Notes: a model not told the origin generated them from the sequence alone. DNA of 64,000 nucleotides from Macrostomum lignano (GCA_002269645.1 NIVC01002152.1:62001-126000), one strand, 5' to 3'; positions 4,658-55,845 are shown, counted from the first letter of the stretch. Translations and numbers: made by a program.

Positions 4658-5189
4658 TGTACAAAATATTGCACTCCGTGTCTAACAGGTGAAAATTCAT
4701 CAAGGTTTTACTAATAATCTACCAATCAGTTTTCACTTGCACTCTCAGACATGTACTTTAACACTGCGGTCAATACTACATGTACTCCTAGCATGAGGCT
4801 CTCTTGCACTTTTAATTGATAACTAATTAATCGATTTTTGTCATGTATAAAACTCAGAGCGAAAGGTCACACACAGATTTGCGCTCGCGGCCTATCTATC
4901 AATAATTTAGACAGGTAGTTTATTTTCACAAAGCTAAATTAATAAACCTAATGAGCAAATCGTTTCGGGCAGTTATCTACCGAAAATTAATTTGACAGGA
5001 AACAGGATCGTTATTCTATGCACAAACTGACAGATAGTGAAGTAGCATTGTAGACACGATTTAGTTTACAATCTAAATTTATAATAACTTTTTATTTTTT
5101 ACAGAAAAGCGCAAAGCAAGCACTAGACAAAATATGTTCGGTAACAATACATGAGATAATACATTAACAGCTTTGATTGAGGTTAGAGT

Positions 5190-6405
5190 GGGGAATCTGA
5201 GGATGAGGTGGAGTCAGAGTGGAGGATCTGAGGAAGGATGAGGTGGAGTCAGAGTGGAGGATCTGAGGATGAGGTGGTGTCAGAGTGGAGGATCTGAGGA
5301 TGAGGTGGAGTCAGAGTGGAGGATCTGAGGATGAGGTGGAGTCAGAGTGGAGGATCTGAGGATGAGGTGGAGTCAGAGTGGAGGATCTGAGGATGAGGTG
5401 GAGTCAGAGTGGAGGATCTGAGGATGAGGTGGAGTCAGAGTGGAGGATCTGAGGATGAGGTGGAGTCAGAGTGGAGGATCTGAGGATGAGGTGGTGTCAG
5501 AGTGGAGGATCTGAGGCAGGATGGGGTGGTGTCAGAGTGGAGGATCTGAGGATGAGGTGGAGTCAGAGTGGAGGATCTGAGGATGAGGTGGAGTCAGAGT
5601 GGAGGATCTGAGGATGAGGTGGAGTCAGAGTGGAGGATCTGAGGCAGGATGGGGTGGTGTCAGAGTGGAGGATCTGAGGCAGGATGGGGTGGTGTCAGGG
5701 TGGAGGATCTGAGGCAGGATGGGGTGGTGTCAGAGTGGAGGATCTGAGGATGAGGTGGAGTCAGAGTGGAGGATCTGAGGATGAAGTGGAGTCAGAGTGG
5801 AGGATCTGAGGATGAGGTGGAGTCAGAGTGGAGGATCTGAGGATGAGGTGGAGTCAGAGTGGAGGATCTGAGGATGAGGTGGAGTCAGAGTGGAGGATCT
5901 GAGGATGAGGTGGAGTCAGAGTGGAGGATCTGAGGATGAGGTGGAGTCAGAGTGGAGGATCTGAGGCAGGATGGGGTGGTGTCAGGGTGGAGGATCTGAG
6001 GCAGGATGGGGTGGTGTCAGGGTGGAGGATCTGAGGCAGGATGGGGTGGTGTCAGGGTGGAGGATCTGAGGCAGGATGGGGTGGTGTCAGAGTGGAGGAT
6101 CTGAGGCAGGATGGGGTGGTGTCAGAGTGGAGGATCTGAGGCAGGATGGGGTGGTGTCAGAGTGGAGGATCTGAGGCAGGATGGGGTGGTGTCAGAGTGG
6201 AGGATCTGAGGATGAGGTGGAGTCAGAGTGGAGGATCTGAGGCAGGATGGGGTGGTGTCAGAGTGGAGGATCTGAGGCAGGATGGGGTGGTGTCAGAGTG
6301 GAGGATCTGAGGATGAGGTGGAGTCAGAGTGGAGGATCTGAGGCAGGATGGGGTGGTGTCAGGGTGGAGGATCTGAGGCAGGATGGGGTGGTGTCAGGGT
6401 GGAGG
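5190..6405. repeat. 31/35-bp purine-rich minisatellite
   Basis: Units GAGGATGAGGTGGAGTCAGAGTGGAGGATCT and GAGGCAGGATGGGGTGGTGTCAGAGTGGAGGATCT interspersed. Confidence 0.95.
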
Positions 6406-6769
6406 AAAAACTAACAACCGTGAACGGTGAATTAACTGCGACAAGGACACAGAAGCCTCCGCAAGTGCATTGGCAGGTATGCTCTGCTTTGACAACAATA
6501 ATACAAAATTCGAAGGGCTCAATGCGATCAACCAGAATAACAAAAAATTCTGGCGTTGGAATGTGCGTAACTAGAAGGAATTTACTAATACTTAGCACTG
6601 AGTATTTAGCACTGAGGGCAAGACATGATTATAAAAGCAAAGGCCTTGTAGCAAACGAGAGCAAGGCATATTGATGTAGGAAAATTTGCAGCTAGCAACA
6701 GTGTCATGAATAAGACCATGTGTACCATGTGTATAAATGTCCATATGTTTACATTTCAATCTGTCTTGG

Positions 6770-7245
6770 TGTCCGTGTGTCAAAATTTCCATGTGTCTAA
6801 ATGTCCGTGTGTCAAAATTTCCATGTGTCTAAATGTCCGTGTGTCAAAATGTCCGTGTGTCTAAATGTCCGTGTGTCTAAATGTCCATGTGTCTAAATGT
6901 CCGTGTGTCTAAATGTCCATGTGTCTAAATGTCCGTGTGTCTAAATGTCCGTGTGTCTAAATGTCCATGTGTCTAAATGTCCGTGTGTCTAAATGTCCGT
7001 GTGTCTAAATGTCCATGTGTCTAAATGTCCGTGTGTCTAAATGTCCGTGTGTCTAAATGTCCGTGTGTCTAAATGTCCGTGTGTCTAAATGTCCGTGTGT
7101 CTAAATGTCCGTGTGTCTAAATGTCCGTGTGTCTAAATGTCCGTGTGTCTAAATGTCCATGTGTCTAAATGTCCGTGTGTCTAAATTTCAATGTTTCTTA
7201 GTGTCCATGAGTTAAAATGTCCGTGTGTCTAAATGTCCGTGTCTT
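6770..7245. repeat. 16-bp minisatellite
   Basis: Unit AAATGTCCGTGTGTCT. Confidence 0.93.
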
Positions 7246-7699
7246 TTGGTGTCAATCTACCTTAGCAGCTGATTTAATACTTAGTTCAGATTTTAGCCAG
7301 CCTGGATGTAAAGCAGAAAAGCGATAAACTTCAATATTAATACACTCGCACGGTGGCTACTGTTAGTAGTAGTCCAATTGGACGCAGACAGTTGCGAGTG
7401 CAGATAAAAACGAGCATGACATGCATAATGCGATGGAATCTGGACTGTAATGAAACTGTAGCTACGCAATCAAGCAGTTCCCAGGGACAGAAGCTTACAC
7501 ATCATTAGCTTACAATAGAGATTCAATGTGCAAAAAAATAACATGTGCAGACACTGACTGGATATTCTTGATCGAAAGTTCTTTTTCGTAAATATTAATT
7601 CGATAATTTTTTTGAAAGAGACATACGAGAAGAGAAGATTAAAGACAAGAGAAGCAGGTAAATACAGGAGACAACATCAAAGACATGTAAAGCAAAGAA

Positions 7700-8832
7700 T
7701 ACCATAGTAACCTACGCAATCATAGTTAGCCATAATAACCTACGCGTCTATAGTAACCATAGTAAACTACGTGGTCATAGTAACGATAGTAACCATAGTA
7801 AACTACATGATAATAGTAACCATAGTAACTATAGTAACCTACGCGTCTATAGTAACCAACGCGTCTATAGTTACCATAGTAACCTACGCGTCTATAGTTA
7901 CCATAGTAACCTACGCGTCTATAGTTACTATAGTAACCTACGGGTCTATAGTTACCATAGTAACCTACGCGTCTATAGTTAACATAGTAACCTACGCGTC
8001 TATAGTAACCATAGTAAACTACGTGGTCATAGTAACGATAGTAACGATAGTAAACTACATCATAATAGTAACCATACTAACTATAGTAACCTACGCGTCT
8101 ATAGTAACCTACGCGTCTATAGTAACCAACGCGTCTATAGTTACCATAGTAACCTACGCGTCTATATAGTTACCATAGTAACCTACGCATCTATAGTAAC
8201 CTACGCGTCTATAGTTACCATAGTAACCTACGCGTCTATAGTTACTATAGTAACCTACGCGTCTATAGTTACCATAGTAACCTACGCGTCTATAGTAACC
8301 TACGCGTCTATAGTTACCATAGTAACCTACGCGTCTATAGTTACCATAGTAACCTACACGACTATAACCTACGCGTCTATATAGTTACCATAGTAACCTA
8401 CGCGTCTATAGTAACCTACGCGTCTATAGTTACCATAGTAACCTACGCGTCTATAGTTACTATAGTAACCTACGCGTCTATAGTTACCATAGTAACCTAC
8501 GCGTCTATAGTAACCTACGCGTCTATAGTAACCTACGCGTCTATAGTTACCATAGTAACCTACGCGTCTATAGTTACCATAGTAACCTACGCGTCTATAG
8601 TTGCCATAGTAACCTACGCGTCTATAGTTACCATAGTAACCTACACGACTATAACCTACGCGTCTATAGTTACCATAGTAACCTACGCGTCTATAGTAAC
8701 CTACGCGTCTATAGTTACCATAGTAACCTACACGACTATAACCTACGCGTCTATAGTTACCAAAGTAACCTACGCGTCTATAGTAACCTACGCGTCTATA
8801 GTTACCATAGTAACCTACGCGTCCATAGTAAC
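7700..8832. repeat. 27/18-bp minisatellite abutting and overlapping the NR-A stop codon
   Basis: Units CATAGTAACCTACGCGTCTATAGTTAC and TATAGTAACCTACGCGTC; degenerates towards 7700. Confidence 0.95.
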
Positions 8833-10270
8833 CAAAGACGGCTCGCTGTTAACGGAAGATTGCAGCATCTCAGAGAAAAGCTGCGGCATTCTAATGGCCT
8901 GCCTATCAAAATAGGAGGACCAGAAGCCCAAACAGAATAATCGAATCGAGTTGATGCGGCCTGACAGAGCCATCAATTTGCCGCGGCGGACAACATCCGG
9001 ACAGATTCGGCGAAGCTCTCTAAGAAAAGTCGACTGCAACTTGTCGATTTCGTCCGGATTGTCGAAATGCTGGCCTGGCGGGCACTGCAACATAAAGATT
9101 GCTTTTAGCAGCAGGAATTCGATGCGACTGACGTTCCACTCGGTGAGCAGTCGAGCTGTCAATCGAATCTGCTGGCTGGCACGCATGGCCAGGCTGCTGT
9201 TGAACGCGCTCACCCGGCCTGGGGGCACGCAGACGTTGGCCGCAAAGTACAGCAGGCCGGTGAAGGGCACCGAGTTCATGGACAGCTCGAATGAGACCAG
9301 ACCGGCCCAGTGGGCCTGCAACAGGCGGATGCGGTCGGGCATGGCGACCCGGCTGAAGCCCGGCAGGTCTTTGGCGAACTGTACCAGCCTGGCCGAGTGG
9401 GCATCCAGACAGGGCAGGACAATCACGGCCAGTTCGCGCGGCTCCACGGAGAGGAAATCTTCGCCCATTGTTGATGTTTCCATTGAGAACTGGGGCCTGT
9501 CCATGGAGCGGATGGTCTGCAACCGACGGTGAGGCGATGCAGATATTCAAGTTACTGAGAGGCATTCACAACGGTTGCTGAGCTTCTAGAGGTGTGGGGA
9601 GGCCGGGTGTTGGCAGAGCAGCGTCTGAATCTTGCGCCGCGAACCCTGGTTCGATTCCGTGCGTTACATCACAGCCATGAGGGCCAACCCCTCAAAAGAC
9701 GATTAGAAAGTCAAGGGGCCGATGTACACCTGTGTGAGCTGTGTATGAGTGCGTGACTGCGTACAGTATTGGTGCGCTTGTATGTTGCTCAGGAGTCTGC
9801 GGAATGGCCAGAATTGCTATCAGCGCTGGTTGTAAAATATGAATTCAGGAACAGGTACAGAGGCTCAAGAGGGTGCGGGCAGACATACGCGGAGCTCCTT
9901 ACTTTGCACAGTTCGCTTTCGACTTCTCCAGCAGACGGTGAGGCTGTGCGCGGCGTGTCAGCGCTGGAATTCGTTGAAGCTGCCGGACCAGAAGCTGCTT
10001 GATTCGCCGCGGCGGCGGCTCGAGCGGCGGCTCTGGCAGCGGCCCTGGCGGCTGAGGCCTCAGCCCGGTGCAGCCGGGGGTATCGCTCCGACTCGGTGCC
10101 AGGAGCTACGGTGCGCAGCATGCCCGGCTGCATCCCGGACATGAGGCAGCGGCGCCACCGGCAGGCGGGGCACTGCTTCCGGCTGGCGTTGTTCACCGGA
10201 CACAGCGGTGACTGCTGTTTAGGGTCCTGGATTGGGGGACGGGCGGGGACTGTGCTGCGGCTGAGGCTGT

Positions 10271-10362
<92 letters not shown>

Positions 10363-10375
10363 CACAGACAGACAC

Positions 10376-10444
<69 letters not shown>

Positions 10445-10595
10445 AAGACGGGCAGACACACAGACAGACAGACACTAAGACAGACAGACACACAGACAGA
10501 TACACAGACAGACAGACAGACACACAGACAGACAGACAGACAGGCAGACAGACAGACAGACAGACAGATAGGCAGACAGACACACAGACAGATAC

Positions 10596-10666
<71 letters not shown>

Positions 10667-10787
10667 CACAGACACACACACAGACAGACACACAGACAGA
10701 CACACAGACAGACACACACACAGACAGACAGACACACAGACAGACACACACACAGACAGACAGACAGACACACAGACAGACACACAC

Positions 10788-10818
<31 letters not shown>

Positions 10819-11261
10819 CACAGACAGACACACAGACAGACACACACACAGACAGACAGACACACAGACAGACACACACACAGACACACAGACAGACACA
10901 CAGACAGACACACACACAGACAGACAGACACACAGACAGACACACACACAGACAGACAGACAGACACACAGACAGACACACACACAGACAGACAGACAGA
11001 CAGACAGACAGGCAGACAGACAGACACACAGACAGATGCATAGCAAGTCAATCCTCTCACCTGCAGAAACGGCTGGTACTGGCCGTCGGTACTGCTAGCG
11101 CACAGGTAAGTCAGGCAGGAGTGCACAGTCCGCTTAAAGAAAGCTTTACAAGCATTGCACGTAGCGGCTCCGTAGTGCACGCCGGTGGCGGTCAGGCCAC
11201 AGACGGCGCACAAACCGACGCCAGAAAATTGAGGGTTCAGTGGGTCGGAGTAGTCGGTCAT
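8815..11261 (-). CDS. Nuclear receptor NR-A, divergent ERR/NR3-like (C4 zinc-finger DBD + LBD), 3 exons, ~408 aa
   Basis: Exons 11261-11061 (CAG|GTGAGA), 10226-9903 (ATCCAG| ... AAA|GTAAGG) and 9516-8815 (TTGCAG|), all phase 0. DBD CAVC...[11 protein letters not shown]...[12 protein letters not shown] signature [31 protein letters not shown]-2 QLFSEML. The start ATG is the first in-frame Met; an upstream exon cannot be excluded. The exon-2 acceptor is the best in-frame candidate. Confidence 0.85.
10271..11036. repeat. (GACA)n/(CA)n compound microsatellite filling NR-A intron 1
   Basis: Continuous GACA/CACA tract. Confidence 0.97.
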
Positions 11262-11504
11262 GAGGAAGTGTTGGGACTCAGTCTGCGGCAACCTTTGCCT
11301 GTAGCTGCAAGATGGCTGTTACTGTCTGCGTCGACGTTGCTGGCTCTGAAGTCATAATTTGATTTCGAAGATTTAGCTAAATAAAAGTTTTCGTTTTTAG
11401 TATATCTGACTTAAGCTTTAAATTTTAGGCGCTTAGACTAAGGATTTACAAAAAAAACCTAACACACCACTTAGATACATCCCAATCTCAAACATCTTAA
11501 CTCA

Positions 11505-12205
11505 CCTTCCCCTCACCAATGTACACATAATCAAACCCTTCACTATATCCCAGTCAATTTACACACGCTCAAACCCTTCCCCAACCCCACCAACGTACAC
11601 GCTCAAAACCTTCACTACACCAGCCAATGTACACCCGCTCAAGTCCTTCACTATCCCAGCCAATGTACACCCGCTCAAGTCCTTCACTATCCCAGCCAAT
11701 GTACACCCGCTCAAGTCCTTCACTATCCCAGCCAATGTACACCCGCTCAAACCATTCACTGCCGCAGCCAATGTACACCCGCTCAAACCATTCACTGCCC
11801 CAGCCAATGTACACCCGCTCAAACCATTCACTGCCCCAGCCAATGTACACCCGCTCAAACCATTCACTGCCCCAGTCAATGTACACCCGCTCATCAAACA
11901 CTTCACTGCCCCAGCCAATGCACACCCGGTCATCAAACACTTCACTGCCCCAGCCAATGCACACCCGCTCATCAAACACTTCACTGCCCCAGCCAATGCA
12001 CACCCGCTCATCAAACACTTCACTGCCCCAGCCAATGCACACCCGCTCATCAAACACTTCACTGCCCCAGCCAATGCACACCCGCTCATCAAACACTTCA
12101 CTACCCCAGCCAATGCACACCCGCTCATCAAACACTTCACTGCCCCAGCCAATGCACACCCGCTCATCAAACACTTCACTACCCCAGCCAATGCACAGAC
12201 GCTTC
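11505..12205. repeat. 36/39-bp minisatellite (AATGTACAC family)
   Basis: Unit CCCAGCCAATGTACACCCGCTCAAGTCCTTCACTAT plus a 39-bp variant. Confidence 0.93.
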
Positions 12206-12964
12206 AAACCCACTATTTAATGCTCCAGTTCTGAAAACTGTATTGCCTTAACGAATCTAATGAATCTACTTAAAGATCTCAGTACGATAATACTGAGTGA
12301 GAACAACTTGGTAAACTTAATATTTCCAATACAGTTCAAAAATTTGGAAAAATAGAACAAAGCATAAAAATTGAAACCTTTATTATTATTAGTATGTACG
12401 AGTATTTTGGTACAAAGCGACAATGTGGGATTTTATTGGAATACATTACTTCCATCCAAATACAATTAAATACAGGTTCCTACTAATCTAATTGGAATGA
12501 TGTCTACTTTAAAAAGTAATCAATCAGGTCATTAACAAAAGCGTGGAAGGACATTGAAAGGCAGGGCGTAAAAATAAATAAATCACAGCTTCTGACCCCT
12601 AAATATAATAGTTATACATCGGTAAATTTGTAAAAATTTAGCAATCGGAATAACAATGATGGCTTTAAATGGTTTAACAAGTCTTGCTAGGAGCCTAAGA
12701 CGATTAAGGCAGTGAGTAAGACTAAAAAAAATTGAATTATAAGGATTTCAAAAAGGATTGTTGCATTTAATAAACTTGCTAAACGATTTCGAAGGCATCA
12801 GGGAAAAGTCACTGTTACACGAATGAGTAGAGTCGTTGGTTAAAATGATAGAAATTCAAATACTGTATGCTGCTCAGAATCAAACTAACAGAGCCAAATT
12901 GTGCGCGACTATGTACAAATAGCCGTAAAACTCGATTGATTATAAACGATTGCTAATAAGCCAC

Positions 12965-13465
12965 AGTATACACGCTCAAGTCCTTCCCTACCCCAGCCAA
13001 TGTATACACACCCAAACCCTTCCCCACCCCAGCCAATGTACACACGCTCAAGTCCTTCACTATCCCAGCCAATGTACAATACACACGCTCAAATCCTTCC
13101 CTACCCCAGCCAATGTACACACGCTCAAATTCTTCCCTACCCCAGCCAATGTATACACGCTCAAGTCCTTCACTATTCCAGCCAATGTACACACGCTCAA
13201 ATCCTTCCCCACCCCAGCTAATGTACACACGCTCAAATCCTTCACTACCCCAGCCAATGTACACACGCTCAAGTCCTTCACTATCCCAGCCAATGTACAC
13301 ACGCTCAAATCCTTCCCTACCCCAGCCAATGTACACACGCTCAAATCCTTCCCTACCCCAGCCAATGTATACACGCTCAAGTCCTTCACTATTCCAGCCA
13401 ATGTACACACGCTCAAACCCTTCCCCACTCCAGCCAATGTACACACGCCCAAACCCTTCCCAGTC
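12965..13465. repeat. 36-bp minisatellite (AATGTACAC family) just 3' of the NR-B stop
   Basis: Unit CCCAGCCAATGTACACACGCTCAAATCCTTCCCTAC. Confidence 0.93.
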
Positions 13466-13509
13466 ATCAAAGTGTGCCAATAAGTTAATAAATCGACAAA
13501 TTTGCTAGA

Positions 13510-16500
13510 TTAAATCCGCCGAGACGATACAGCGTGCGGAAATTCATTCAACGAAAACTCCAGCATCTCGGACACGAGCTGCGGCGGCAGGAAGGCGTTG
13601 CTACGTACAACAGTAGACCAGAAACCAACTGAAGCAATCTTCAACGCCATCAGGTTGTTCATAAGCAGCAGCAGACTGCTGCGGCGCAGGCTATCCGGGC
13701 AGAGCTGGCGCAACTCGCGCAGGTAGCTGGTCTGCACCAGCTCGATTTGGCTGGGATCTTGCCAGCCATGTCCGGCAGAACCCTCAAATAAAAATATTGC
13801 TTTTAGAAGCAGAAATTCCGATCGGGTTACCTGAAGAAAGAGAAATTAAGAAAATTTGATTAAAAAAAAGCACGTAACAAAAGTGTGCCCAAATACTTTC
13901 CGAGAATGTACAGCCCCCTTTTCTAAACCCTCCCCTCAACACGCCTATTAATGTACACCTGCTCTCAACCCTCTCCTCAACACGCCCCTCAACAGTACAC
14001 CAGCTTTAAGCCCTCCCCTCAACACGCCTATTAATGTACACCCGCTCCTACCCTCAACACGCCTATTAATGTACACCCGCTCCTCCCCTCAACACGCCTA
14101 TTAATGTACACCCGCTCCTTCCCTCAACACGCCTATTAATGCACGCCCGCTCCTCCCCTCAACACGCCTATTAATTTACACCCGCTCCTCCCCTCAACAC
14201 GCCTATTAATGTACACCCGCTCCTACCCTCAACACGCCTATTAATGTACACCCGCTCCGCCCCTCAACACGCCTATTAATGTACACCCGCTCCTTCCCTC
14301 AACACGCCTATTAATGCACGCCCGCTCCTCCCCTCAACACGCCTATTAATGTACACCCGCTCCTACCCTCAACACGCCTATTAATGTACACCCGCTCCTC
14401 CCCTCAACACGCCTATTAATGTACACCCGCTCCTACCCTCAACACGCCTATTAATGTACAACCGCTCCTTCCCTCAACACGCCTGTTAATGTACACCCGC
14501 GCCTCCCCTCAACACGCCTATTAATGCACACCCGCTCCTCCCCTCAACATGCCTATTAATGTACACTGGCTCTAACCCTCCCCTCAACACGCCTAATAAT
14601 GTACACTGGCTCTAACCCTCCCCTCAACACGCCTAATAATGTACACTGGCTCTAACCCTCCCCTCAACACGCCTATTAATGTACACTGGCTCTAACCCTC
14701 CTCTCAACACGCCTAATAATGTACACTGGCTCTAACCCTCCCTCAACACGCCTAATAATGTACACTGGCTCTAACCCTCCCCTCAACACGCCTATTAATG
14801 TACACTGGCTCTAACCCTCCTCTCAACACGCCTAATAATGTACACTGGCTCTAACCCTCCTCTCAACACGCCTAATAATGTACACTGGCTCTAACCCTCC
14901 CCTCAACACGCCTAATAATGTACACTGGCTCTAACCCTCCTCTCAACACGCCTAATAATGTACACTGGCTCTAACCCTCCCCTCAACACGCCTAATAATG
15001 TACACTGGCTCTAACCCTCCCCTCAACACGCCTAATAATGTACACTGGCTCTAACCCTCCTCTCAACACGCCTAATAATGTACACTGGCTCTAACCCTCC
15101 TCTCAACACGCCTAATAATGTACACTGGCTCTAACCCTCCCCTCAACACGCCTAATAATGTACACTGGCTCTAACCCTCCCCTCAACACGCCTATTAATG
15201 TACACTGGCTCTAACCCTCCCCTCAACACGCCTAATAATGTACACTGGCTCTAACCCTCCCCTCAACACGCCTAATAATGTACACTGGCTCTAACCCTCC
15301 CCTCAACACGCCTAATAATGTACACTGGCTCTAACCCTCCCCTCAACACGCCTAATAATGTACACTGGCTCTAACCCTCCCCTCAACACGCCTAATAATG
15401 TACACTGGCTCTAACCCTCCCCCCAACACGCCCACGAATGCGCAACTTCAGTAACCCTTCCATTAAGAGCTCAACAGGCGCTTAACTTTCTAATTTGTAA
15501 AACAAATTTACTCCTATAATTCAACACTCTTCTCTTGACAGAAATGAATTCCAGTCACCTGCCACAGGGTAAGCCATCGAATCAAGCAGCGCAGGTGTTG
15601 ACCAGTTTTCGGCGAGAAGAAGCCGCGAAATTGAAGACCGTATGCTTCATTTATACTCAGGTCTGAGCAGAACACGATGTTGCCATTGTAGGGGACTGAG
15701 TTCATCGCTACCTCAAATGCGATTAATTCAAGGCAGTGAAGCTGCAACAACAGCACCTGTCAAAAGAGATGAATGACGCCTATCGTATTAGCTAAACTTT
15801 GGGATTCTAGAGTTTCTAAAAAAGGATATTAGAATCCAAGAAAATTCGAGAACGAGACTCGCCGCAATTCAAGAATTGCTGTTCTCAGAAGCTCAGAACG
15901 GGGTATCCGAATTCCAGAATGGGATATTCCAGAATCCCAGAATGGGGATCCTAGAATCCCAGAATGGGGATCCTAGAATCCCAGAATGGGGATCACAGAA
16001 TTCCAGACTGGGGATCCCAGAATTCCAGAATGGGGATCCCAGAATCCCAGAATGGGGATTCCAGAATTCCAGAATGGGGATCCCAGAATCTCAGAATGGG
16101 GATCCCAGAATTCCGGAATCGGGATCACAGAATCTCAGACTGGGGACCCCAGAATCCCAGAATGGGGATCCTAGAATTCCAAAATGGGGATCCCATAATC
16201 TCAGAATGGGATATTTCAGAATTCCAGAATGGGATATTCCAGAATTCCAGAATGGGGATCCCAGAATTCCAGAATGGGGATCCCAGAATCCCAGAATGGG
16301 GATCCTATCCAGAATGGGGATCACAGAATCCCAGACTGGGGATCCCAGAATTCCAGAATGGGGATCCCAAAATTCCAAAATGGGGATCCCAGAATCTCAG
16401 AATGGGGATCCCAGAATCCCAGAATGGGGATCCCAGAATTCCAGAATGGGGATCCCAGAATTCCAGAATGGGGGTCCCAGAATCCCAGAATGGGGATCCC

Positions 16501-19500
16501 AGAATCCCAGAATGGGGATCCCAGAATTCCAGAATGGGGATCTCAGAATCCCAGAATGGGGTCCCAGAATCCCAGAATGGGGATCCCAGAATCCCAGAAT
16601 GGGGATCTCAGAATTCCAGAATGGGGATCTCAGAATTCCAGAATGGGGATCTCAGAATTCCAGAATGGGGATCTCAGAATCCCAGAATGGGGATCCCAGA
16701 ATCCCATAATGGGGATCCTAGAATTCCAGAATAATGCCAGATAATGCCAGACATGATGAGAATCACCTCCCACGCCACCCAATTAACTCGCCTTGTCCTG
16801 CATTGGCAGCGGGCCAAATCCGGGCACAGCTTTAGCAAACTTGACCAGGTCGGCAATCAGCCTGTCCGTGCACAGCGTCAGCGTGTAGGCCAGCCTGGCC
16901 GGGGTCTCGGCCACGCCGCTAGCAGACACGTCGCTAAGGCTAAACGTTGGAGAATCGATAGCGGCCAGCTGGCTCAGCAGAGTTAGCGACTGCACTGCCG
17001 CAGGCGAATGCGGGTGCGGGGGCGGGAGCGGAGACGGCGGAGGAGGCAGCGGAAGTGTAGCGGCGGAAGTAGCTGCGGCGGTAGAGGCAGAAGCGCCATT
17101 GGCAGAAGGGAAACTCGCCGTTGGCTGATTAGGAAAGTCGGAGATCGATGAAGGTGGCTGTGAGCTGTAATGGAGAGGTATTTCATGGAATAATATTGGA
17201 TTACACTCCGGCTTCAAGGATCCCAAATATTTGACATCTGGGGGCATTAACAACCTCGAAATCAAAGGATCTGGGGAGCATTGTAACCTGGGAATTGTTG
17301 GGATCTGGAGGGGTGATTGGGATCTGGAGGGATTAACAGTAGAACTACCAAGAGGGGGGATTTCCCCCCTCTGACAATTTTTTTGCTGCGCCGGAACGGA
17401 GCAACGCAGGCACACGAAATTCAAGAATACGGGCTAACTATTTGTTGCGCACCTTCTCAAACAATAATCAAGTCGCCAGCCCTCCAGACCGTCGAGATAT
17501 TCGACGATTCTGTTAGAAGGTCGGATTCTTCCCATAAGCGCCAGTGTATTCAGTACACCCCTGTGCGCCAATCAGCACTGCGCCTCAGTGCAGCCTTGCC
17601 AAGCCTCTAAATTTTATCAGAACGTCGACCACGTGTGTCTGCATCAGTTCTGCCTTCGATGGTCAATAGCCTTCACCCAGGTGGAGCTTCTGGACCCTCA
17701 ACAGGTGGCACCAGGTGATTATGAACACCCTGATCCGAATTTCTCTAGTTTCGCTGATCAAGCCTTGACAGTGGGCAAGCCTCAACCGCCGGACATTCTC
17801 AGCTGGTCTCTCGAGCCTTGATAAAAGAGCATGATGAAAAATCACGCTCAGGTGTCCTTAATCACCCGGTGCCACTTGTTGAAGGTGCCGACGGCGTCGG
17901 GGTGATGACTGAAGGCTCGAGAGACTAGCTGAGAATGTCCGGCAGTTGAGGTTTGCCCATTATTGAAGCTTGATAAGAAAAATCTGACATAGCTCCAACA
18001 GGCTCTTCATAGTCACCTGGTGCCACCTGTTGAAGGTGCCGACGGCGTCAGGGTGATGGCTGAATGCTTGACTGACCAACTGAGGATGTCCAGCAGTTGA
18101 TTTTTGCCCACCGTCGAGGCTTGATCGACGAAACTAGAGAAATCCGCATCAGGGTGTCGATAGTCACCTGGTGTAATCTGTTGAAGGAGTCGACGGCGTC
18201 GGAATGATGACGGAATGCTTGAGAGACTAGCTGAGAATGTCTGGCGGTTGATTCTTGCCCACTTTTGAGGCTTGATCGGCGAAACTCGAGAAATTCGCAT
18301 CAGGGTGTTCATAGTCGCCTGGTGTCATCTTTTGAAGGTGCCGACGGCGTCCGGGTGAAGACTAAATGCTCGAGAGACCAGCTGAGAATACCTAGCAGTT
18401 GAGGCTTGCCCAAAAAAAAGTTAGAAAGTTAGCCCGTGTTCTTGAATTTCGTGTGCCTGCGTTGCTCCGTTCCAGCGCAGCAAAAAAATTTGTCAGGAGG
18501 GATTCCCCCCCTCTTGGTAGTTCGACGGGCGGAAAAAAGGCTTGGTATTCCTACTTTTAATGGTTGGTAACTGGGGGGAATTAATGGGATCTGGGGGGTT
18601 AATGGGATCGGGGGGGGGGTAATAGTATCGGGGGGAGGTTAATGGTATCTGGGGTAGGGGTTAATGGTATCTGGGGTGGGGGTTAATGGTATTTGGGGTG
18701 TGGGTTAATGGTATGGGGGGGGGTTAATGGTATCTGGGGTGGGGGTTAATGGTATCTGGGGTGGGGGTTAATGGTATCTAGGGTAGGGGTTAATGGTATC
18801 TGGGGTAGGGGTTAATGGTATCTGGGGTAGGGGTTAATGGTATCTGGGGTAGGGGTTAATGGTATCTGGGGTAGGCGTTAATGGTATCTGGGGTGGGTGT
18901 TAATGGTATCTGGGGTAGGGGTTAATGGTATCTGGGGTGGGTGTTAATGGTATCTGGGGTAGGGGTTAATGGTATCTGGGGTAGGGGTTAATGGTATCTG
19001 GGGTGGGGGTTAATGGTATGGGCGGGTTAATGGTATCTGGGGTGGGGGTTAATGGGATCTGGGAGGGTTAATGGTATCTGGGGGTTAATGGGATGTGGGG
19101 TAGAGTTTGGATGGGATCTGGGGGGGGGGGTTAATGGGATCTGAGGAGATTTAATGGGATCTGAGTCTGTATGTATGCAGCGCATCCTAGGAACCAGGAC
19201 GTTAAGACTGCCGAACAGGAGTCCATTAAAATGGTTTAAGCTTTTTTGGTACATTCGCCATATATGAGTCGGATATTCAAGCTCATACTACAAGTGCTAA
19301 CCTAGCATTGCCTTCCTGCTGCTGCTGCTGCTGCTGAGGACGCAGCCTTGGATACCGCTTGGTCTCTGTGCCGGCTTCAACGCTGCGCAGCAGACCCGGT
19401 CGCATGTTGGCGCGCAGACAGCGGCGCCACCGGCAGGCGGGGCACTGCTTCCTATTGGGCTCGCGCACCGGGCACAGCTGATCATCGCTAGCGCCAGACA

Positions 19501-19717
19501 GGCGCCTGGCGCACTGGTAAGTCAGGCAGGAGTGCACGGTGCGTTTGAAAAACGTTTTACAAGCGTTGCACGTGGCCGCGCCGTAGTGAACGCCGGTTGC
19601 GCGCAGGTCGCACACGGAGCAGCCGCCCAGCAGGTCAACAATCGGCCGCTGCTCAGCCGGGGCAGCGGCCGCTTCGTCGACATCAATGGCCGTGTCCTTC
19701 GTCTGGCCCGCCAGCAT
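13510..19717 (-). CDS. Nuclear receptor NR-B, divergent ERR/NR3-like, 4 exons, ~435 aa
   Basis: Exons 19717-19302 (AG|GTTAGC, phase 2), 17164-16792 (TTACAG| ... AAG|GCGAGT), 15756-15559 (TTGACAG| ... CAG|GTGACT) and 13830-13510 (CTTCAG|) total 1308 nt in frame. DBD CSVC...CNACKTFFKRT...[31 protein letters not shown]|[25 protein letters not shown]-2 QLVSEML. Confidence 0.88.
13925..15435. repeat. 35-bp then 40-bp minisatellite in NR-B intron 3 (AATGTACAC family)
   Basis: CCCTCAACACGCCTATTAATGTACACCCGCTCCTC, switching at ~14560 to CCTCAACACGCCTAATAATGTACACTGGCTCTAACCCTCC. Confidence 0.95.
15900..16735. repeat. 22-bp minisatellite in NR-B intron 2
   Basis: Unit GAATGGGGATCCCAGAATTCCA / GAATGGGGATCCCAGAATCCCA. 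Confidence 0.95.
17342..18523. mobile_element. Foldback-like non-autonomous element with ~98-bp terminal inverted repeats and internal ~151-bp repeats
   Basis: 17342-17439 (GAACTACCAAGAGGG...GGGCTAACT) is the reverse complement of 18427-18523. Internal units start at ~17861, 18011, 18162 and 18313, with one inverted copy at ~17695-17822. No TSD is evident. Confidence 0.75.
18570..19160. repeat. 22-bp G-rich minisatellite in NR-B intron 1
   Basis: Unit GGTATCTGGGGTAGGGGTTAAT; related GGGATCTGG units also occur at 17290-17335 on the other side of the foldback element. Confidence 0.92.
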
Positions 19718-19731
19718 GTAAAAAAAATTAT

Positions 19732-20212
19732 TTCTAAGAAAGTTACACTAGATTTTCAGGTATTTCTACGAAATCAAAGCCTACATGTAGTTAGCTCAAA
19801 TTTTAAAGAAACATATTGGTCAGTTTTTGTTAATTTTTAAGAAAAAATTAGGACTAATTTTAGCGCTTCTAAGAAATATAATAGGGTTTCTGTGAATTTT
19901 AACGATAGTTTCGGTCAGTTTCATAGAAATAAAAGTTTGTCTACGTCACTTTCTAAGAAGCCAATTTTCTTAATTACTAAGAAATGTAAGGCTATTCATT
20001 ACAAATTTGATTTCTAAGAATCAGAGTTGATTTTTAACTATTTAAAAAAAGTATGTCTATGTTTATAAGAAATACAGGGCTTCAATTTATGTCAGTTTCT
20101 AAGAAATGAATCGTTGGCTTTTTGATTTTCAAAGAAGTCTGTGGTTAGCTTTACAGATTTTTTAAAGATGCAGTTAAGTTTAAATAGGTTAGTCTTAAAC
20201 TCTTTCTAAGAA
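19732..20212. promoter_or_regulatory. Cluster of TTCN3GAA (GAS/STAT-type) palindromes upstream of NR-B
   Basis: TTCTAAGAA at 19732, 19867, 19951, 20012, 20097 and 20204; also TTCTACGAA 19764, TTCATAGAA 19920 and TTCAAAGAA 20128. Function is inferred only. Confidence 0.35.
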
Positions 20213-20465
20213 ATCTTGGGTACTCCTTAAAAGTTAAAGACCAGTTGTTGGCTTAGGGATAATTTCTAATTTAAAAAGTAGGGTAGCTTCAGAATATTTT
20301 TTTCTCGAATTCTATGCCCTATTTTAGACAGTAAAATAAAAAACACAGAAAAGTCACAGTGTTGCAATTGCAGCAGCAGTTAGAATTCGCTCTGCTAACT
20401 GAAAGCTTCTTTAATACAACAAGCAACAAAAAGCAGCAATTCAGCAGCCAGATCTGACAGTAATG

Positions 20466-20693
20466 TATCCGGCCATCAGGAAATTTATTGCGCTTATTCT
20501 TTCATTGCTCCTCATTGCGCAAATTCCTATTTTCAGTTAAACCTCTCCTACTGTGAAAGTGATGCAATACAAATAAAAAAATTAAAACTGGGTGATTATT
20601 TTATGTTGAATAAATATATTACACATATGCTTTTTGCTCTAACTGATTATAATTCGCAATAAATGCCACAACAATTTTCCGGATGGCCAGATA
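20466..20693. mobile_element. Possible short MITE
   Basis: TATCCGGCCATCAGGAAA near 20466 versus reverse complement TATCTGGCCATCCGGAAA ending at 20693; TSD not clear. Confidence 0.4.
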
Positions 20694-21284
20694 TTTAATC
20701 AATACTAATAAGTACTCTCTGCACTTCCTCCGACAATAAACAAAAAACAATAGCAATAATGAAAAGCTTGCGAGAAAATAACATTTAGATTCATCTCAGC
20801 TATGACAGAACAAGATTCGCCAGCACAATGCCAGCTATACTACTCATAGCAAACACAAACGCATCGGGGTGTATTTTTCTAGGCGATTTTATGAAAATTA
20901 ATATGGCGCTTTTCATTTTTTTCAATCCGGATTTGAGGGTGAGGCAGTTAAACAAACACGCAAAGTGCACATTGTTCTATGCTATTACTATACTAATCAA
21001 CATCTGCATAGCTAATTAGCTGATAAACTTAACGAAGTACAACGTATAGCACATTGATTAAAAATGAAAGCAATCTGTTGAAACTTAAAAAATTTAAACT
21101 GATGCCAAAATGTACACACAGATGAAATAGACCGGCACAGGTAATGTTAATCTGACTAGAGATCAGTCCCGAGCTCGAACCCGCTTAGCAATGATTGAGG
21201 CTTGGAAGATTTGTCTGAGGCAAAATTAGACAATCAGATACCAGATTGGTCTAATATAAGTATATAAGTATGGAAATTATAGAT

Positions 21285-21825
21285 AATAAACACTATCCCA
21301 TTGTTTATCAGTGAGCAATAAACACTATCCCATTGTTCATCAGCGAGCAATAAACACTATCCCATTGTTTATCAGTGAGCAATAAACACTATCCCATTGT
21401 TCACCAGTGAGCAATAAACACTATCCCATTGTTTATCAGTGAGCAATAAACACTATCCCATTGTTCATCAGCGAGCAATAAACACTATCCCATTGTTTAT
21501 CAGTGAGCAATAAACACTATCCCATTGTTTATCAATGAGCAATAAACACAATCCCATTGTTCACCAGTGAGCAATAAACACTATCCCATTGTTTATCAGT
21601 GAGCAATAAACAGTATCCCATTGTTTATCAGTGAGCAATAAACACTATCCCATTGTTTATCAGTGAGCAATAAACACTATCCCATTGTTTATCAGTGAGC
21701 AATAAACAGTATCCCATTGTTCACCAGTGAGCAATAAACACTATCCCATTGTTTATCAGTAAGCAATAAACACTATCCCATTGTTCATCAGCGAGCAATA
21801 AACACTATCCCATTGTTTATCAGTT
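21285..21825. repeat. 32-bp minisatellite starting a few nt after the NR-C stop
   Basis: Unit AATAAACACTATCCCATTGTTTATCAGTGAGC. Confidence 0.95.
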
Positions 21826-21831
21826 TCCACC

Positions 21832-23209
21832 TCATTTGAAACACTCGGAAGCGGCGGCTTTATCTGCAGCGCTCTGCATAGCGGCCAGATCCGAGGATAT
21901 TCGGGGCACCTGGCCGAGGGAGAATTTCAGCATCTCGGACATCAGCGGCGGCGGCAGGAATGTGGTCCGCTGCATCACCCGGGACCAGTAGCCGACTGAG
22001 AATACCTGTATAGCGGACAGCATGCCGCTCAGAGACAGCAGCTTGCCTCGGCGAGCATTGTCCGGACAGATGGTCCGCAGCTCCCGCAGGTAGGTGGCCT
22101 GGGCGGCCTGGATCTGCTCCGGCTGGCGCCATTCGTCCAGTGGGGACGTGGCGTCGAAAAGAAACACCAATTTGAGCAGGAGGAACTCCGCCCAGGTGAC
22201 GCCTGTGCTGGTCAGCAGGCGGGCCAGACACCGCATCTGGCTGCCGCAGCGAACCGGGATCAGGCCGGCCACGCTGGAGGCCTGCGGGACAGATGATGAC
22301 AAAATATATCAGCTTTTTATAGGCTTGTTTGCCATTGTTTCTACTGACAGTAGGCTGTTGCAGTAGGGGCTTGAAGTTTTGGCATAGAGTGCCTGCGAAG
22401 CTACAGTCCACGCCTGTGGATCTGGGAAGGTGGCAGTGGCCCAGCAACTGAGGATCTGGGAGGCTGGTCCAGCAACTGGGGATCTGGGAGGCTGGCCCAG
22501 CAACTGGGGATCTGGGAGGCTGGCCCAGCAACTGGGGATCTGGGAGGCTGGCCCAGCAACTGGGGATCTGGGAGGCTGGCCCAGCAACTGGGGATCTGGG
22601 AGGCTGGCCCAGCAACTAGGGATCTGGGAGGCTGGCCCAGAAACTGACACTCTGGGAGGCTGGCCCAGAAACTGACACTCTGGGAGGCTGGCCCAGAAAC
22701 TGAGGATCTGGGAGGCTGGCCCAGCAACTGAGGATCTGGGAGGCTAGCCCAGAAACTGAGGATCTGGGGACCTGGGAGGCTGGCGCAGTGTTAGCGATGA
22801 GTTCTTTCAGTTTCATCTTTACATGACTACAAAGGAAAGGATAATTGGAGAAGCAGGAAAAGCACTTTTTGTCGTCAAAGGAAAACTTATGGAAGCCAAA
22901 GCGAAAACACTTTGCTAGGCTAAAAATGCTTTGCTGACTTCTGAAAATACGAGTACTTCCCACGATTAAGCACCTGGGATCACAGGGCACCAGCTGCTGT
23001 GCGAAGCGATAACAAAAGCATATCCTGTCTTTTGCCCCCCCCCCTCCCGACCAGTTCTGGCAGTTGAAACGCTTCGGTTAAAAACATCGCTTTTTTGCTT
23101 GTCCATTAGCCTGCCTTGCTTGCCTGTCTGCCTGCCTGACTGCCTGCCTGTCTGCCTGCCTGCCTGCCTGCCTGTCTGTCTGTCTGTCTGTCTGCCTGTC
23201 TGCCTGCCT

Positions 23210-23304
<95 letters not shown>

Positions 23305-24430
23305 TGTCTGTCTGTCAGCTCGATTGCAGGCGCGGCAAACGAGTTTTAACTACACTTCTCTAGAGTAGCGCCAGCTGAGTAGCAGCTGACTGGATTCGAA
23401 TTCGAGCGTGTGCCAGCAGCGTACGTATGATCCGTGCGCGTACTTAAGGGCCAGCGAAATGCTAGCTGTTAGCTGTTGGTCAACTGTTGCTTTGGCACTC
23501 TTCAAATAAATATAAATCAATCAATCAATCAGTCAGCCTGACGATCAGTCAGCCAGTCCTCACCTGATCCTCCCTCAGCGCATAGCTGGCCGAGAACTTC
23601 AGACTGCCATCGTAGGGCACAGAACTGTAGGCCACCTGCCACACAGTCAGGCTGAGCCAGTGCATCTGCAGCAATCGAACCCGGTCCTCCATAGGCAGCT
23701 GAGTGAATTCGGTCAGTCGTTTCGAAAAATCAATCAGATCAACGGCCAGTTTATTAGTGGCGGCACCCAGCTGAGCAGTGTGCTCATCCGACTGGCCTAG
23801 GGAGCCGGCGGGCGAGCTGACAGACGCGGCCGATAGCTGCTCAGCATCCGCCTGCTGATGAAGCTGATCATCTGGGGTGCACTCGTTGAGCAGCTCGGTC
23901 AGTCGGCATACCAGGGCGCTCCGGTTCGATGCCTGATGGTCGCCCTGGACGGGCCGCTGAGCCAGCAGCTGGCGCATGTAGGCAGGCGGCTCGCGGCCCA
24001 ACGGCAGGCTGGCGGCTGATGCTGCAGCTTCGGCTGTTTCAACGCTGTCAACCGCCGGCTGACTGCAGGAATCAGTCAGCAGAGTCGCCCCCGCTGATGC
24101 CTCAGCCGATGCAGGAGGAAGAAGAGCAGCTGTAGGCGATGAGCAGCGGACTAGAGCGGTCTGCATGCGGGCCTCCAGACAGCGGACCCATCGGCAGGCA
24201 GGGCAATGCCGCTTGCGACTGCTCTTGGGCACCGGGCAGCGGGAGCCGGAGCGCTGCACCGGGCAGAAGTAGGTCACGCAAGAGTGCACAGTGCGCTTGA
24301 AAAATGCTTTACAAGCCTCGCAGGTTACTGCGCCGTAATGATGACCAGTTGCTTTGCGGAAGCAGATACTGCAAGACTCGTCTTCTAGGAGCTGCTGCTG
24401 CTGCTGTTGGTACATTGGTTGTTGCTTCAT
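21832..24430 (-). CDS. Nuclear receptor NR-C, ERR/NR3-like, 2 exons, ~438 aa
   Basis: Exons 24430-23564 (CAG|GTGAGG) and 22281-21832 (CCCGCAG|), phase 0. DBD CSIC...[11 protein letters not shown] (ERR-type P-box)...CPACRWVRC. LBD LIDFSKRLTEFTQLPMEDRVRLLQMHW, SVPYDGSLKF, EFLLLKLV, AF-2 PLMSEML. Confidence 0.9.
22415..22785. repeat. 28-bp minisatellite in NR-C intron
   Basis: Unit GGGATCTGGGAGGCTGGCCCAGCAACTG. Confidence 0.93.
23108..23316. repeat. (CCTG)n/(TCTG)n microsatellite in NR-C intron
   Basis: Continuous CCTG tract. Confidence 0.95.
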
Positions 24431-24957
24431 GCAATATGAAATTAAAGTGTTGGATTCAACAGGCGATAGGGTAAAGTCTCCGCATGCGCATACAAGCGTG
24501 TACTCAAAACCCGAAGCCAGTTCGTGCTAAATCTATTTTATTCTGGGGCCTAAAAGTATTTTTCGATCCTGTTCGGTTTGCGTCACACGGGAGTGGCGCT
24601 GATTGGCTGGGGGGGGGGGTGACAAGTGTCATGGAGAACTCTGAGGGTAGAGAGATACGCTAGCGAGGCCGTGAGCTCTAGAAAGGAAGACGAAATAAAT
24701 ATTGTACAAGGGAGGGGAAGAAGCGGTGGGTTTCAGGGGGAGCTTAGACGGGCTTCACTCCCGCCTTGAACCGAAGAAAGGGGAGAATAGTTGCAGGAAA
24801 CTGCGACACGAGGATTAAGTAAACGACTCGCAAGAAAAAGGGTGGAAACAGGGAAAAGACAAATAATAACATGCGTAATGGTCTCAGACTCTTTTTATTT
24901 ACGATAATTTGCTCATACAGGCCTTAACTACTGATGAACTTCTTATTTACTGCTGAA

Positions 24958-25940
24958 GCTACAGACATACAGATTCAGCTACAGACATACAGATTCAGCT
25001 ACAGACATACAGATTCAGCCACAGACATACAGATTCAGCTACAGACATACAGATTCAGCTACAGACATACAGATTCAACTGTAGACATACAGATTCAACT
25101 ACAGACATACAGATTCAGCTACAGACATACAGATTCAGCTACAGACATACAGATTCAGCTACAGACATACAGATTCAACTGTAGACATACAGATTCAGCT
25201 ACAGACATACAGATTCAGCTACAGACATACAGATTCAGCTACAGACATACAGATTCAGCTACAGACATACAGATTCAGCTACAGACATACAGATTCAGCT
25301 ACAGACATACAGATTCAACTGTAGACATACAGATTCAGCTACAGACATACAGATTCAGCTACAGACATACAGATTCAGCTACAGACATACAGATTCAACT
25401 GTAGACATACAGATTCAGCTACAGACATACAGATTCAGCTACAGACATACAGATTCAGCTACAGACATACAGATTCAGCTACAGACATACAGATTCAGCT
25501 ACAGACATACAGATTCAGCTACAGACATACAGATTCAGCTACAGACATACAGATTCAGCCACAGACATACAGATTCAACTGTAGACATACAGATTCAGCT
25601 ACAGACATACAGATTCAGCTACAGACATACAGATTCAGCTACAGACATACAGATTCAGCTACAGACATACAGATTCAGCTACAGACATACAGATTCAGCT
25701 AAAGACATACAGATTCAGCCACAGACATACAGATTCAGCTACAGACATACAGATTCAGCTACAGACATACAGATTCAGCTACAGACATACAGATTCAGCC
25801 ACAGACACACAGGTTCAGCCACAGACATACAGATTCAGCTACAGACATACAGATTCAGCCACAGACATACAGGTTCAGCTACAGACATACAGATTCAGCC
25901 ACAGACACACAGGTTCAGCCACAGACACATAGATTCAGCT
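24958..25940. repeat. 20-bp minisatellite
   Basis: Unit ACAGACATACAGATTCAGCT with periodic CAACTGTAG variant. Confidence 0.96.
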
Positions 25941-26684
25941 CACCTATGAGTTATCTAGTCTAGTAAGTGTTGACTGAAATCAAGCCAGTTTCATAGCACA
26001 TGTAAGAATAAAGCAAAAAGTGAGCTATATAGAAAAAGAGGTGGAGTCAGGACAAGCGAGAGCGCATCAAAAGTCCATCATATTAGCTTATCAATCTTGA
26101 GACACATTTATTTAGGTCAGCAACAAGGAGATGGATTATATTATTGTCAATATAAACTCAACAAAAATAATCTGGGAAGAGCATTTTAGCAGTTTTCGAA
26201 AAAGTACATATCTGTATTTTCTTCCCAGCAACAACAAGCGGTGCCTGGGAGTAGAAACTATTTAAAAGGTTACCTACTTCAGTTAATAAAGAAGATTATA
26301 CAGACAAAAAAATTCAATAAGCAATATAATCCGATAGGGCCTGGCGGTACAAAAAAACAGATAAAAATACTTCTCTATTAGTAAAACAGCTTTAAAAACA
26401 ATTGAGTAATTCGATGTAAAGCCCAGCTATAGTAAATCTAACTCATATACTACTAAGAGTAGGGAACATTAAGGCACAAAAACGCCAATCGCATAGAGGA
26501 AAAATAGCACAGCGTATATATAGCCTTAGAAGTTATCACAAAAGTAAAAAAATCGATTAAACATTGTAAAATAGTTCTGTTTTGAAAAAGGCGGCTTCTG
26601 TAAAAAAATTATCACGCTGGTTTGCCTTCACTATTAATATACAAAGGGAAACTCGCTATTTGTTTTCTCTGATGTAAAATAAGT

Positions 26685-27135
26685 GTACATTGGAGACCGG
26701 GGGTGGGTTAGAGGGGTAAGGGAGAGAATGAGTGTACATTGGGGATCGGGGTTGGATTAGAGGGGTAAGGAATAGAACGAGTGTACATTGGGGAGCGGGG
26801 TTAGGTTAGATGGGTAAGGGATAGAACGAGTGTACATTGGGGAGCGGGTTGGGTTAGAGGGGTAAGGGAGAGAAGGAGTGTACATTGGGGAGCGGGGTTG
26901 GGTTAGAGGGGTAAGGGAGAGAAGGAGTGTACATTGGGGAGCGGGGGTTGGGTTAGAGGGGTAAGGGAGAGAAGGAGTGTACATTGGGGAGCGGGGGTTG
27001 GGTTAGAGGGGTAAGGGAGAGAAGGAGTGTACATTGGGGAGCGGGGTTGGGTTAGAGGGGTAAGGGACAGAATGAGTGTACACTAGGGAGCGGGGTTGGG
27101 TTATAGGGTCAGGGAGAGAGCGGGTGTACATTGGG
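26685..27135. repeat. 49/50-bp minisatellite (AATGTACAC family, opposite strand)
   Basis: Unit GAGTGTACATTGGGGAGCGGGGTTGGGTTAGAGGGGTAAGGGAGAGAAG. Confidence 0.92.
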
Positions 27136-55676: not shown

Positions 55677-55845
55677 ATGGCTGACATGCCTTTTAAGTGG
55701 AAAAAGGTCGCACACACATCATCTGGTAACATTCCACTGCCTAGACCACGGCATGGTCACAAAGCTGTGTCAATTAAGGACCTTATTATAATATTTGGAG
55801 GTGGAAATGAAGGAATCATTGATGACCTTCACGTTTTTAACACAA
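55677..55845 (+). CDS. HCFC1: Host cell factor (kelch/beta-propeller), first coding exon; rest of gene beyond the window or not found
   Basis: [56 protein letters not shown]|, donor A|GTGAGT; matches the HCF signature [35 protein letters not shown]. The exon is too short for the ORF track. Confidence 0.92.

Follow-up and report, generated by a model that had tools for sequence, protein, structure and literature searches.

The estrogen-related receptors (ERRs, NR3B) are constitutive orphan receptors, and their C-terminal extension VRLDRVRGGRQKY reads the 5' TCA extension of the ERRE. For the steroid receptors (NR3C) we know of no protostome member. Here we analyse a trio of nuclear-receptor genes, g3, g2 and g1, that resemble these systems and lie on the minus strand of a 64-kb stretch of Macrostomum lignano contig NIVC01002152.1 (assembly GCA_002269645.1, 62001-126000); we refer to this whole stretch as the window and count positions from its first nucleotide. 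We assign a probability of about 0.85 to our principal conclusion, that the trio consists of three functional, paralogous receptor genes arranged in tandem and belongs to a clade, specific to Macrostomum, that comprises nine to ten NR3-type (ERR-like) receptors.

The trio and the ERRs have in common the P-box, in the case of g3, and several features of the ligand-binding domain (LBD): the segment YxS(L/V)PY(D/N), the AF-2 motif L-x-x-EML, the helix-3 lysine and a profile match to ERRbeta. The trio differs from ERRs in that LBD identity is 20-26%, RGGRQKY is absent, the D-box comprises 8-21 residues instead of five, the P-box of g1 and g2 carries Asn, and the pair equivalent to Glu275/Arg316 is replaced; moreover, M. 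lignano has multiple copies and not one. Steroid receptors and their ancestors (NR3C; AncSR2, AncCR, MR and AR) provide the best or near-best single-sequence PDB matches, spanning helices 3-9, for the LBDs of g1 and g2, as well as the top Foldseek matches, but the g1 and g2 matches end near helix 9-10 and the P-box of the trio is not GSCKV. Local amplification with divergence in both P-box and D-box is likewise known for the M. lignano HR96 group, for HR96b of parasitic flatworms (whose DNA-binding domain, DBD, is long and which has a CHC2 finger) and for nematode supNRs, which also have introns or extra sequence inside the DBD, as the trio does (PMC8363021). These groups, however, belong elsewhere (NR1J, NR2A-derived), and the trio retains all eight zinc-binding Cys.

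The genes of the trio, their ERR-like nature and the idea of a lineage-specific amplification are already published. Wu & LoVerde 2021 (PLoS One, PMC8363021) listed 61 nuclear receptors of M. lignano, and the DBDs of the trio are residue-for-residue the same as those given in their supplement (S2/S5) for MlERR2, MlUn6 and MlUn7 (g3 = MlERR2, PAA60440.1; g2 = MlUn6, PAA91460.1 / PAA91417.1; g1 = MlUn7, PAA91461.1). An earlier reading of the window from its sequence alone (the sequence-only reading) had taken the trio as potentially an undescribed sensing system, to be reconsidered if the genes proved to be known annotated orthologues; in part they are, as all three are in GenBank and bear the names MlERR2, MlUn6 and MlUn7 (PMC8363021). 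Four MlERRs with the ERR P-box were the first flatworm NR3 members reported, MlUn6 and MlUn7 were filed as 'divergent' and outside the nomenclature for their atypical P-box, a canonical ERR was not found in M. lignano, and the analysis was restricted to DBDs (PMC8363021). According to S5 of PMC8363021, Cheng et al. 2021 (Front Mar Sci) placed all ten ERR-like genes, the trio included, in NR3. The MlERR-like genes are the only NR3 receptors reported for flatworms, where NR3 was long thought lost, a point made in 2021.

A word search of PMC8363021 found no occurrence of 'tandem' or 'same scaffold', and its passages on the D-box and LBD treat other receptors; a literature search for 'Mlig015060' found nothing. 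Beyond PMC8363021, we add the tandem arrangement of the trio, its second copy, evidence of purifying selection, support from the LBD for an NR3 placement of the 'divergent' MlUn6 and MlUn7, the differences in D-box and ligand anchor, and full-length gene models, including a correction of the g2 model in GenBank. In this regeneration model, the trio documents how receptor genes have multiplied and diverged.

Three complete receptor genes in tandem

The window is eukaryotic DNA, dense in minisatellites. Between 8815 and 24430, three successive groups of open frames on its minus strand match Pfam zf-C4 and Hormone_recep; exon models for them were built from the open frames, canonical splice sites and comparison of the paralogues:

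g3 (MlERR2, BOX15_Mlig015060g1, PAA60440.1): 24430..23564 and 22281..21832, minus strand; 438 amino acids (aa), one GT-AG intron of 1282 nt
g2 (MlUn6): 19717..19302, 17164..16792, 15756..15559 and 13830..13510, minus strand; 435 aa, second intron with a GC donor
g1 (MlUn7): 11261..11061, 10226..9903 and 9516..8815, minus strand; 408 aa

These models confirm three full nuclear-receptor genes, each with DBD and LBD, arranged head-to-tail on the minus strand and free of stop codons (internal stops in 0/3 genes), where the sequence-only reading had located them. Both Pfam domains exceed their gathering cut-offs in all three full proteins (zf-C4, 64-69 bits against 21.1; Hormone_recep, 35-65 bits against 23.5). 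The six introns are all GT-AG except for one GC-AG intron in g2. No additional receptor fragments were found in the 64-kb window by tblastn, and an Rfam scan of the window gave no matches.

P0001, 'hypothetical protein BOX15_Mlig015060g1 [Macrostomum lignano]', shows 100% identity with the g3 model. The initial ATG of g3 (24428-24430) is not kept in a second genomic copy of the locus (see below), where it reads AAG (L002 5725-5727); the start is therefore likely to lie at 24415, as annotated, with the second ATG (MYQQQ...). In the other genomic copy, g3 continues beyond the g3 stop position (...ECFKG). The series of g2 exons matches P0009 (BOX15_Mlig002286g5, 432 aa), the protein that the second copy encodes. 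The non-canonical intron 2 of g2, with its donor at 16791 (AAG/gcgagt ... gacag/GTG), is required because the conserved PMQDK-VLLLQ junction must stay in frame, and it is backed by the annotated protein of the second copy. The NCBI model of g2 on NIVC01002152.1 (13827-19714) has only 327 aa: it enters another frame at 13827, ends in NFLNFSFFR followed by a stop, and is without the C-terminal half of the LBD (helices 7-12), which our 435-aa model restores. The copy of g2 on NIVC01000087.1 is correctly modelled in GenBank (432 aa). The length and boundaries of g1 are the same as those of the 408-aa gene called at the equivalent position in the second copy (L002 21494-23556), and its LBD lies wholly within the last exon.

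A second genomic copy under purifying selection

P0009, the near-identical copy of g2, maps to NIVC01000087.1, a contig of 949 kb. This contig carries three receptor genes, of 437, 432 and 408 aa, in the same order and orientation as in the window, and the locus is collinear with window positions 26816..5084. The whole triplet is thus duplicated, with about 96% DNA identity between the contigs. Exons are 98.7-100% identical between the copies, compared with 92-97% for the long unique non-coding blocks read, and reading frames are intact in 6/6 genes of the two copies. A fused g2-g1 model (P0008, in UniRef and MetaClust only) is an independent sign that g2 and g1 are adjacent. Using Nei-Gojobori counts, we calculated dN/dS for the two copies of each gene, and not between paralogues, because synonymous sites are saturated at the 37-43% LBD identity of the trio:

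g3 copies: 9 synonymous and 4 non-synonymous changes, dN/dS 0.15
g2 copies: 8 synonymous and 3 non-synonymous changes, dN/dS 0.13
g1 copies: 10 synonymous and 0 non-synonymous changes, dN/dS 0.00
Copies pooled: 27 synonymous and 7 non-synonymous changes, dN/dS 0.08 (p=4e-11)

Purifying selection acts on each of the three genes in the two genomic copies. An intact second copy with an excess of synonymous changes is incompatible with an assembly artefact and speaks for function.

Subfamily placement

We searched a profile of five LBDs (A1) against all PDB sequences. The best match was ERRbeta (76 bits, E=2e-20), extending across helices 3-12, and all of the best 60 sequences were NR3 (ERR, ancestral steroid receptors, MR and AR). 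When 1.84 billion representative proteins were scanned with the LBD profile by HMMER, with no word index, M. lignano paralogues ranked first, followed by ERRs. Most hits after those from M. lignano either have the ERR P-box, in general together with VRLDRVRGGRQKY, or are fragments that lack a DBD but carry that extension; their source names include 'ERR2-like' (Tubulanus) and 'estrogen-related receptor gamma-like' (Ptychodera). Single LBDs searched against PDB also placed NR3 first in 3/3 cases (g1, AncSR2 at 46.5 bits; g2, MR at 49.9 and ERRalpha at 48.1 bits; g3, ERRbeta at 40.8 and MR at 39.8 bits), with only isolated non-NR3 entries far down the lists.

DBD, LBD and DBD+LBD trees were run by neighbour-joining (NJ) on 75 receptors from the HMMER scan, with 200 bootstraps and nine non-NR3 outgroups. 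Bootstrap values were as follows:

Nine M. lignano ERR-like receptors as one clade: LBD 99%, DBD 95%, DBD+LBD 100%
NR3 against the nine other receptors: LBD 70%, DBD 24%, DBD+LBD 91%
M. lignano clade with ERR: LBD 4%, DBD 0%, DBD+LBD 4%

The NR3 grouping was therefore recovered on DBD+LBD (91%), whereas a sister relation to ERR was not (4%). On these sequence comparisons, NR3 membership appears reasonably supported for the whole trio, including the two members that PMC8363021 left unplaced.

Several results weigh against an ERR-like placement and call for some caution. In the single-LBD searches, steroid receptors are level with or above ERR, AncSR2 being at the top for g1 and MR for g2. The DBD profile does not discriminate among PDB entries (ERRgamma 78.1, COUP-TF 77.8, GR 77.4 and NR5A2 77.0 bits). 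The sequences in the NJ trees were chosen by similarity to the query, so that the outgroups are few and biased, and a position of the M. lignano clade next to ERR was not recovered (4% on DBD+LBD). In the published analysis, MlERRs clustered with ERR at a posterior of just 0.56 (Wu & LoVerde 2021, PMC8363021). Use of the DBD profile for subfamily assignment was rejected, as its scores fall within 2 bits across NR2, NR3 and NR5.

DNA-binding domains

The DBDs of the trio are as follows:

g3 DBD: 24164..24373, minus strand; zf-C4 64 bits, P-box CEACKA (ERR type), 8-residue D-box PVQRSGSR, extra Cys in FFKRTVHSC
g2 DBD: 19403..19621, minus strand; zf-C4 68.7 bits, P-box CNACKT, 12-residue D-box ARRLSGASDDQL
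g1 DBD: 10131..11210, minus strand; P-box CNACKA, 21-residue D-box ending DPKQQSPL, split by an intron

The eight zinc-binding Cys are invariant across the DBD alignment (A2), and the DBDs of g1 and g2 are 69% identical. The motif FFKRTVHSC(L/V)TY.C, with its extra Cys, is present in all three genes, as the sequence-only reading had noticed, but it is not private to them: among paralogues elsewhere in the genome, MlERR4 has the signature FFKRTVHSC exactly, and MlERR1, MlERR3 and MlUn5 have it with one or two substitutions. The ERR P-box recognized in the same reading holds for g3 and not for g1 (CNACKA) or g2 (CNACKT), in which Asn replaces the first discriminating Glu.

Further differences from ERRs are found in the D-box and in the C-terminal extension. 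Measured from Cys5 to Cys6, the D-box has 8 residues in g3, 12 in g2 and 21 in g1, compared with five in 65/66 non-Macrostomum receptors of the set. In g1 it is interrupted by an intron (11060..10227, 834 nt), and the spliced DBD is the same as that of Wu & LoVerde (PMC8363021). The ERR extension RGGRQKY is missing from 3/3 genes, whereas RGGRQ is present in nearly all ERR hits; by direct reading of the sequence, g1 and g2 retain only the spacing R-x9-(K/R)-Y-x-R (RSVEAGTETKRYPR versus RLDRVRGGRQKYKR in ERR).

Ligand-binding domains

The coactivator charge clamp is conserved in the sequences of all three LBDs, which retain its helix-3 lysine (FAK/FAK/FSK) and its AF-2 glutamate; the xxSEML motif of the sequence-only reading is present throughout, and the LBD alignment keeps AF-2 as L(F/V/M)SEML together with the signature D(R/K)xxLLQ. 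That reading had also likened SVPY(D/N)G to the ERR segment SLPYDDKL, a likeness borne out by the HMMER alignment with human ERRbeta, in which SVP(F/Y)(T/N/D)G occupies this position. LBD identity to ERRs is well below that among the trio (20-26% versus 37-43%).

The NR3 ligand anchor, formed by helix-3 Glu/Gln and helix-5 Arg, is not retained in any of the three genes (H/N in g1, L/N in g2, L/S in g3), and the Glu/Arg pair is substituted in every member of the M. lignano clade in the LBD alignment. Pocket-lining positions also vary between the three genes. Together with the Asn of the g1 and g2 P-boxes and the D-boxes of 8, 12 and 21 residues, these changes support the divergence of DNA-recognition surfaces and pocket residues that had been proposed from the sequence alone. 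The g1 LBD was in addition modelled in three dimensions:

g1 LBD: 8815..9516, minus strand; Hormone_recep 46 bits, helix-3 FAK, signature beginning PGF, AF-2 LFSEML

In an AF2 model built from five sequences, its helices follow the order of an LBD, at low confidence (pLDDT 65). Foldseek searches with this model gave the MR, AR and ERRgamma LBDs as top matches (TM about 0.6), which confirms the general LBD fold only. All three genes encode a canonical helical LBD beside their C4 zinc-finger DBD.

Origin of the array

We found that the closest relative of g3 is not either of its neighbours but MlERR1 (94-99% bootstrap), which stands alone on another contig with no further nuclear-receptor fragments beside it; likewise, no other receptor genes were called within 10 kb of MlERR4. 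The genes g1 and g2 pair in the DBD tree (78%) and not in the LBD tree, and they group with the P-box-bearing MlERRs (core five, 88%). The kinship of g3 with MlERR1, and the pairing of g1 with g2 in the DBD only, indicate that the array is old relative to the radiation of the family and does not derive from a recent triplication. The proposed local expansion of NR3-like receptors consequently stands as a lineage-restricted group (the nine-member clade, 95-100%) and is not supported as a simple local triplication. The copying of the triplet as a block, at about 96% identity, is recent.

Among 90% clusters no orthologues were found outside M. lignano, although other Macrostomum genomes may be missing from the database. 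A whole-protein search gave seven hits, and a search with the hinge removed again recovered M. lignano proteins only; the small number of whole-protein hits is perhaps due, at a guess, to the poly-Q and poly-A hinge swamping candidate selection. We propose that an ancestral ERR-type gene underwent repeated duplication, in part tandem, within the Macrostomum lineage and that the finished triplet would later have been copied as a block, giving either a homeologue or a divergent haplotype.

Predicted function

The proteins of the trio would be transcription factors with sequence specificity and would, like ERRs, recruit coactivators by way of AF-2. Their DNA targets and dimer geometry are probably unlike those of ERR, which binds TCAAGGTCA as a monomer, because g1 and g2 carry Asn in the P-box, the D-box is lengthened and RGGRQKY is lost. 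They could be constitutive orphans, or could have a ligand of another kind; with the Glu/Arg anchor lost, estrogen-like ligands seem unlikely. The list of differences from ERR (P-box, D-box, C-terminal extension and ligand anchor) can serve as a guide to DNA-binding and reporter work.

A more far-reaching and decidedly speculative version would make the M. lignano ERR-like clade a distinct NR3 branch, as opposed to fast-evolving ERRs, with a new half-site and dimer geometry and, in its remodelled pocket, a new ligand class, and the conserved trio a co-regulated module. The new half-site and geometry are suggested by the D-box of up to 21 residues with its internal intron and by the Asn of the P-box; if this version were true, they would be of a kind not seen in any characterised nuclear receptor.

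Alternative explanations

The trio might instead consist of true, fast-evolving ERR (NR3B) orthologues or co-orthologues, a single protostome ERR having been multiplied in Macrostomum, and we put the chances of this at about even. The ERR-specific P-box EACKA is kept in four clade members, g3 included; ERRs are both the best PDB match of the LBD profile and the best hits beyond Macrostomum; a SLPYDDKL-like segment is there; the spacing R-x9-(K/R)-Y-x-R survives in g1 and g2 at the site of ERR RLDRVRGGRQKYKR; and no canonical ERR was found in M. lignano (PMC8363021). Against these stand the low values for a sister placement (4% NJ bootstrap; posterior 0.56 in PMC8363021), the absence of RGGRQKY from 3/3 genes and of the ERR P-box from g1 and g2, a D-box that is not of five residues, and the lost Glu/Arg pocket pair, while the top rank of ERRs may merely reflect that theirs is the slowest-evolving NR3 branch. 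Descent from NR2, NR5 or NR6, with a convergent ERR-like P-box, is very unlikely. It would account for COUP-TF, NR5A2 and NR2C2 scoring within 2 bits of ERR in the DBD profile search, for an NR3 support of just 24% in the DBD-only tree and for the filing of MlUn6 and MlUn7 as 'divergent' outside the nomenclature (PMC8363021); it conflicts, however, with the LBD evidence, in which 60/60 best PDB sequences for the profile are NR3 and single LBDs also find NR3 first, with the NR3 support of 70% (LBD) and 91% (DBD+LBD), and with the grouping of g1 and g2 with the P-box-bearing MlERRs (core five, 88%).

We give hardly any credence to the suggestion that one or more of the trio are decaying or unexpressed duplicates, or that the triplet is a duplication artefact of the assembly. 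The 327-aa NCBI model of g2 on NIVC01002152.1 and the repeat-rich, polyploid genome of M. lignano could be taken in its favour, but frames are intact in both copies with a strong synonymous excess, and P0008 independently joins g2 to g1. The gene order is moreover the same on two long contigs, the second of 949 kb, and collapsed or duplicated reads are excluded by an LBD identity within the trio of just 37-43%, so that the sequence-only reading was right to doubt an artefact. Its suggestion of a sensing system fares less well, as nothing in the sequence favours ligand sensing, and we consider a lineage-specific system for small molecules or xenobiotics unlikely. Lineage-specific expansions of nuclear receptors, such as the nematode supNRs and NR1J/HR96, are often discussed as sensors (PMC8363021). 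The pocket-lining positions, too, differ among g1, g2 and g3. Yet the present data have no bearing on ligand binding, the conserved NR3 ligand anchor is lost, the nearest relatives, the ERRs, are constitutive orphans, and the cluster has just three genes.

Repeats and neighbouring sequence

Minisatellites with units of 4 to 151 bp, a separate one in each place, occur in both spacers of the receptor cluster and in five of its six introns, and their copy number varies from one genomic copy to the other. The g1 intron 1 is filled by a (GACA)n array (10271-11036); because this array is in frame, a mechanical open reading frame (ORF) of 500 aa (9789-11291) reads through the intron as CLSVCLSV repeats. 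The g2 intron 1 contains a foldback element (17376-18490), resembling elements with terminal inverted repeats. Its two arms, at 17376-17439 and 18427-18490, are each 64 nt long and show 97% complementarity; between them lie 151-bp repeats inverted relative to the copy at 17689-17819. The minisatellites of the cluster are located as follows:

11606-12197, 12959-13461, 13926-15432, 15886-16732 and 17835-18402 (part 1)
18594-19143, 21285-21824, 22437-22768 and 23109-23314 (part 2)

Upstream, the receptors have as neighbour a minus-strand gene (27441-34415 and beyond) that encodes 1267 aa, includes a CSPP1_C domain (centrosome and spindle-pole associated protein) and shares their orientation. At 36853-50927 lies a 14-kb satellite of a 23-bp unit, TGTTTTATGGAGTTTGAGCCAGG, in about 594 copies with 91% match and strong GC and AT skew. 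The last part of the window (52000-64000) is AT-rich (27-32% GC, versus 43-62% elsewhere in the window); beyond a 24-bp repeat at 51560-52121 it has one ORF of at least 90 aa, and it includes a 178-bp tandem repeat at 57841-58371. Outside the window, a predicted protein of 3384 aa from the mite Medioppia subpectinata (P0012) has LBD profile matches in 12 stretches and probably represents several receptor genes of a tandem array fused into one model.

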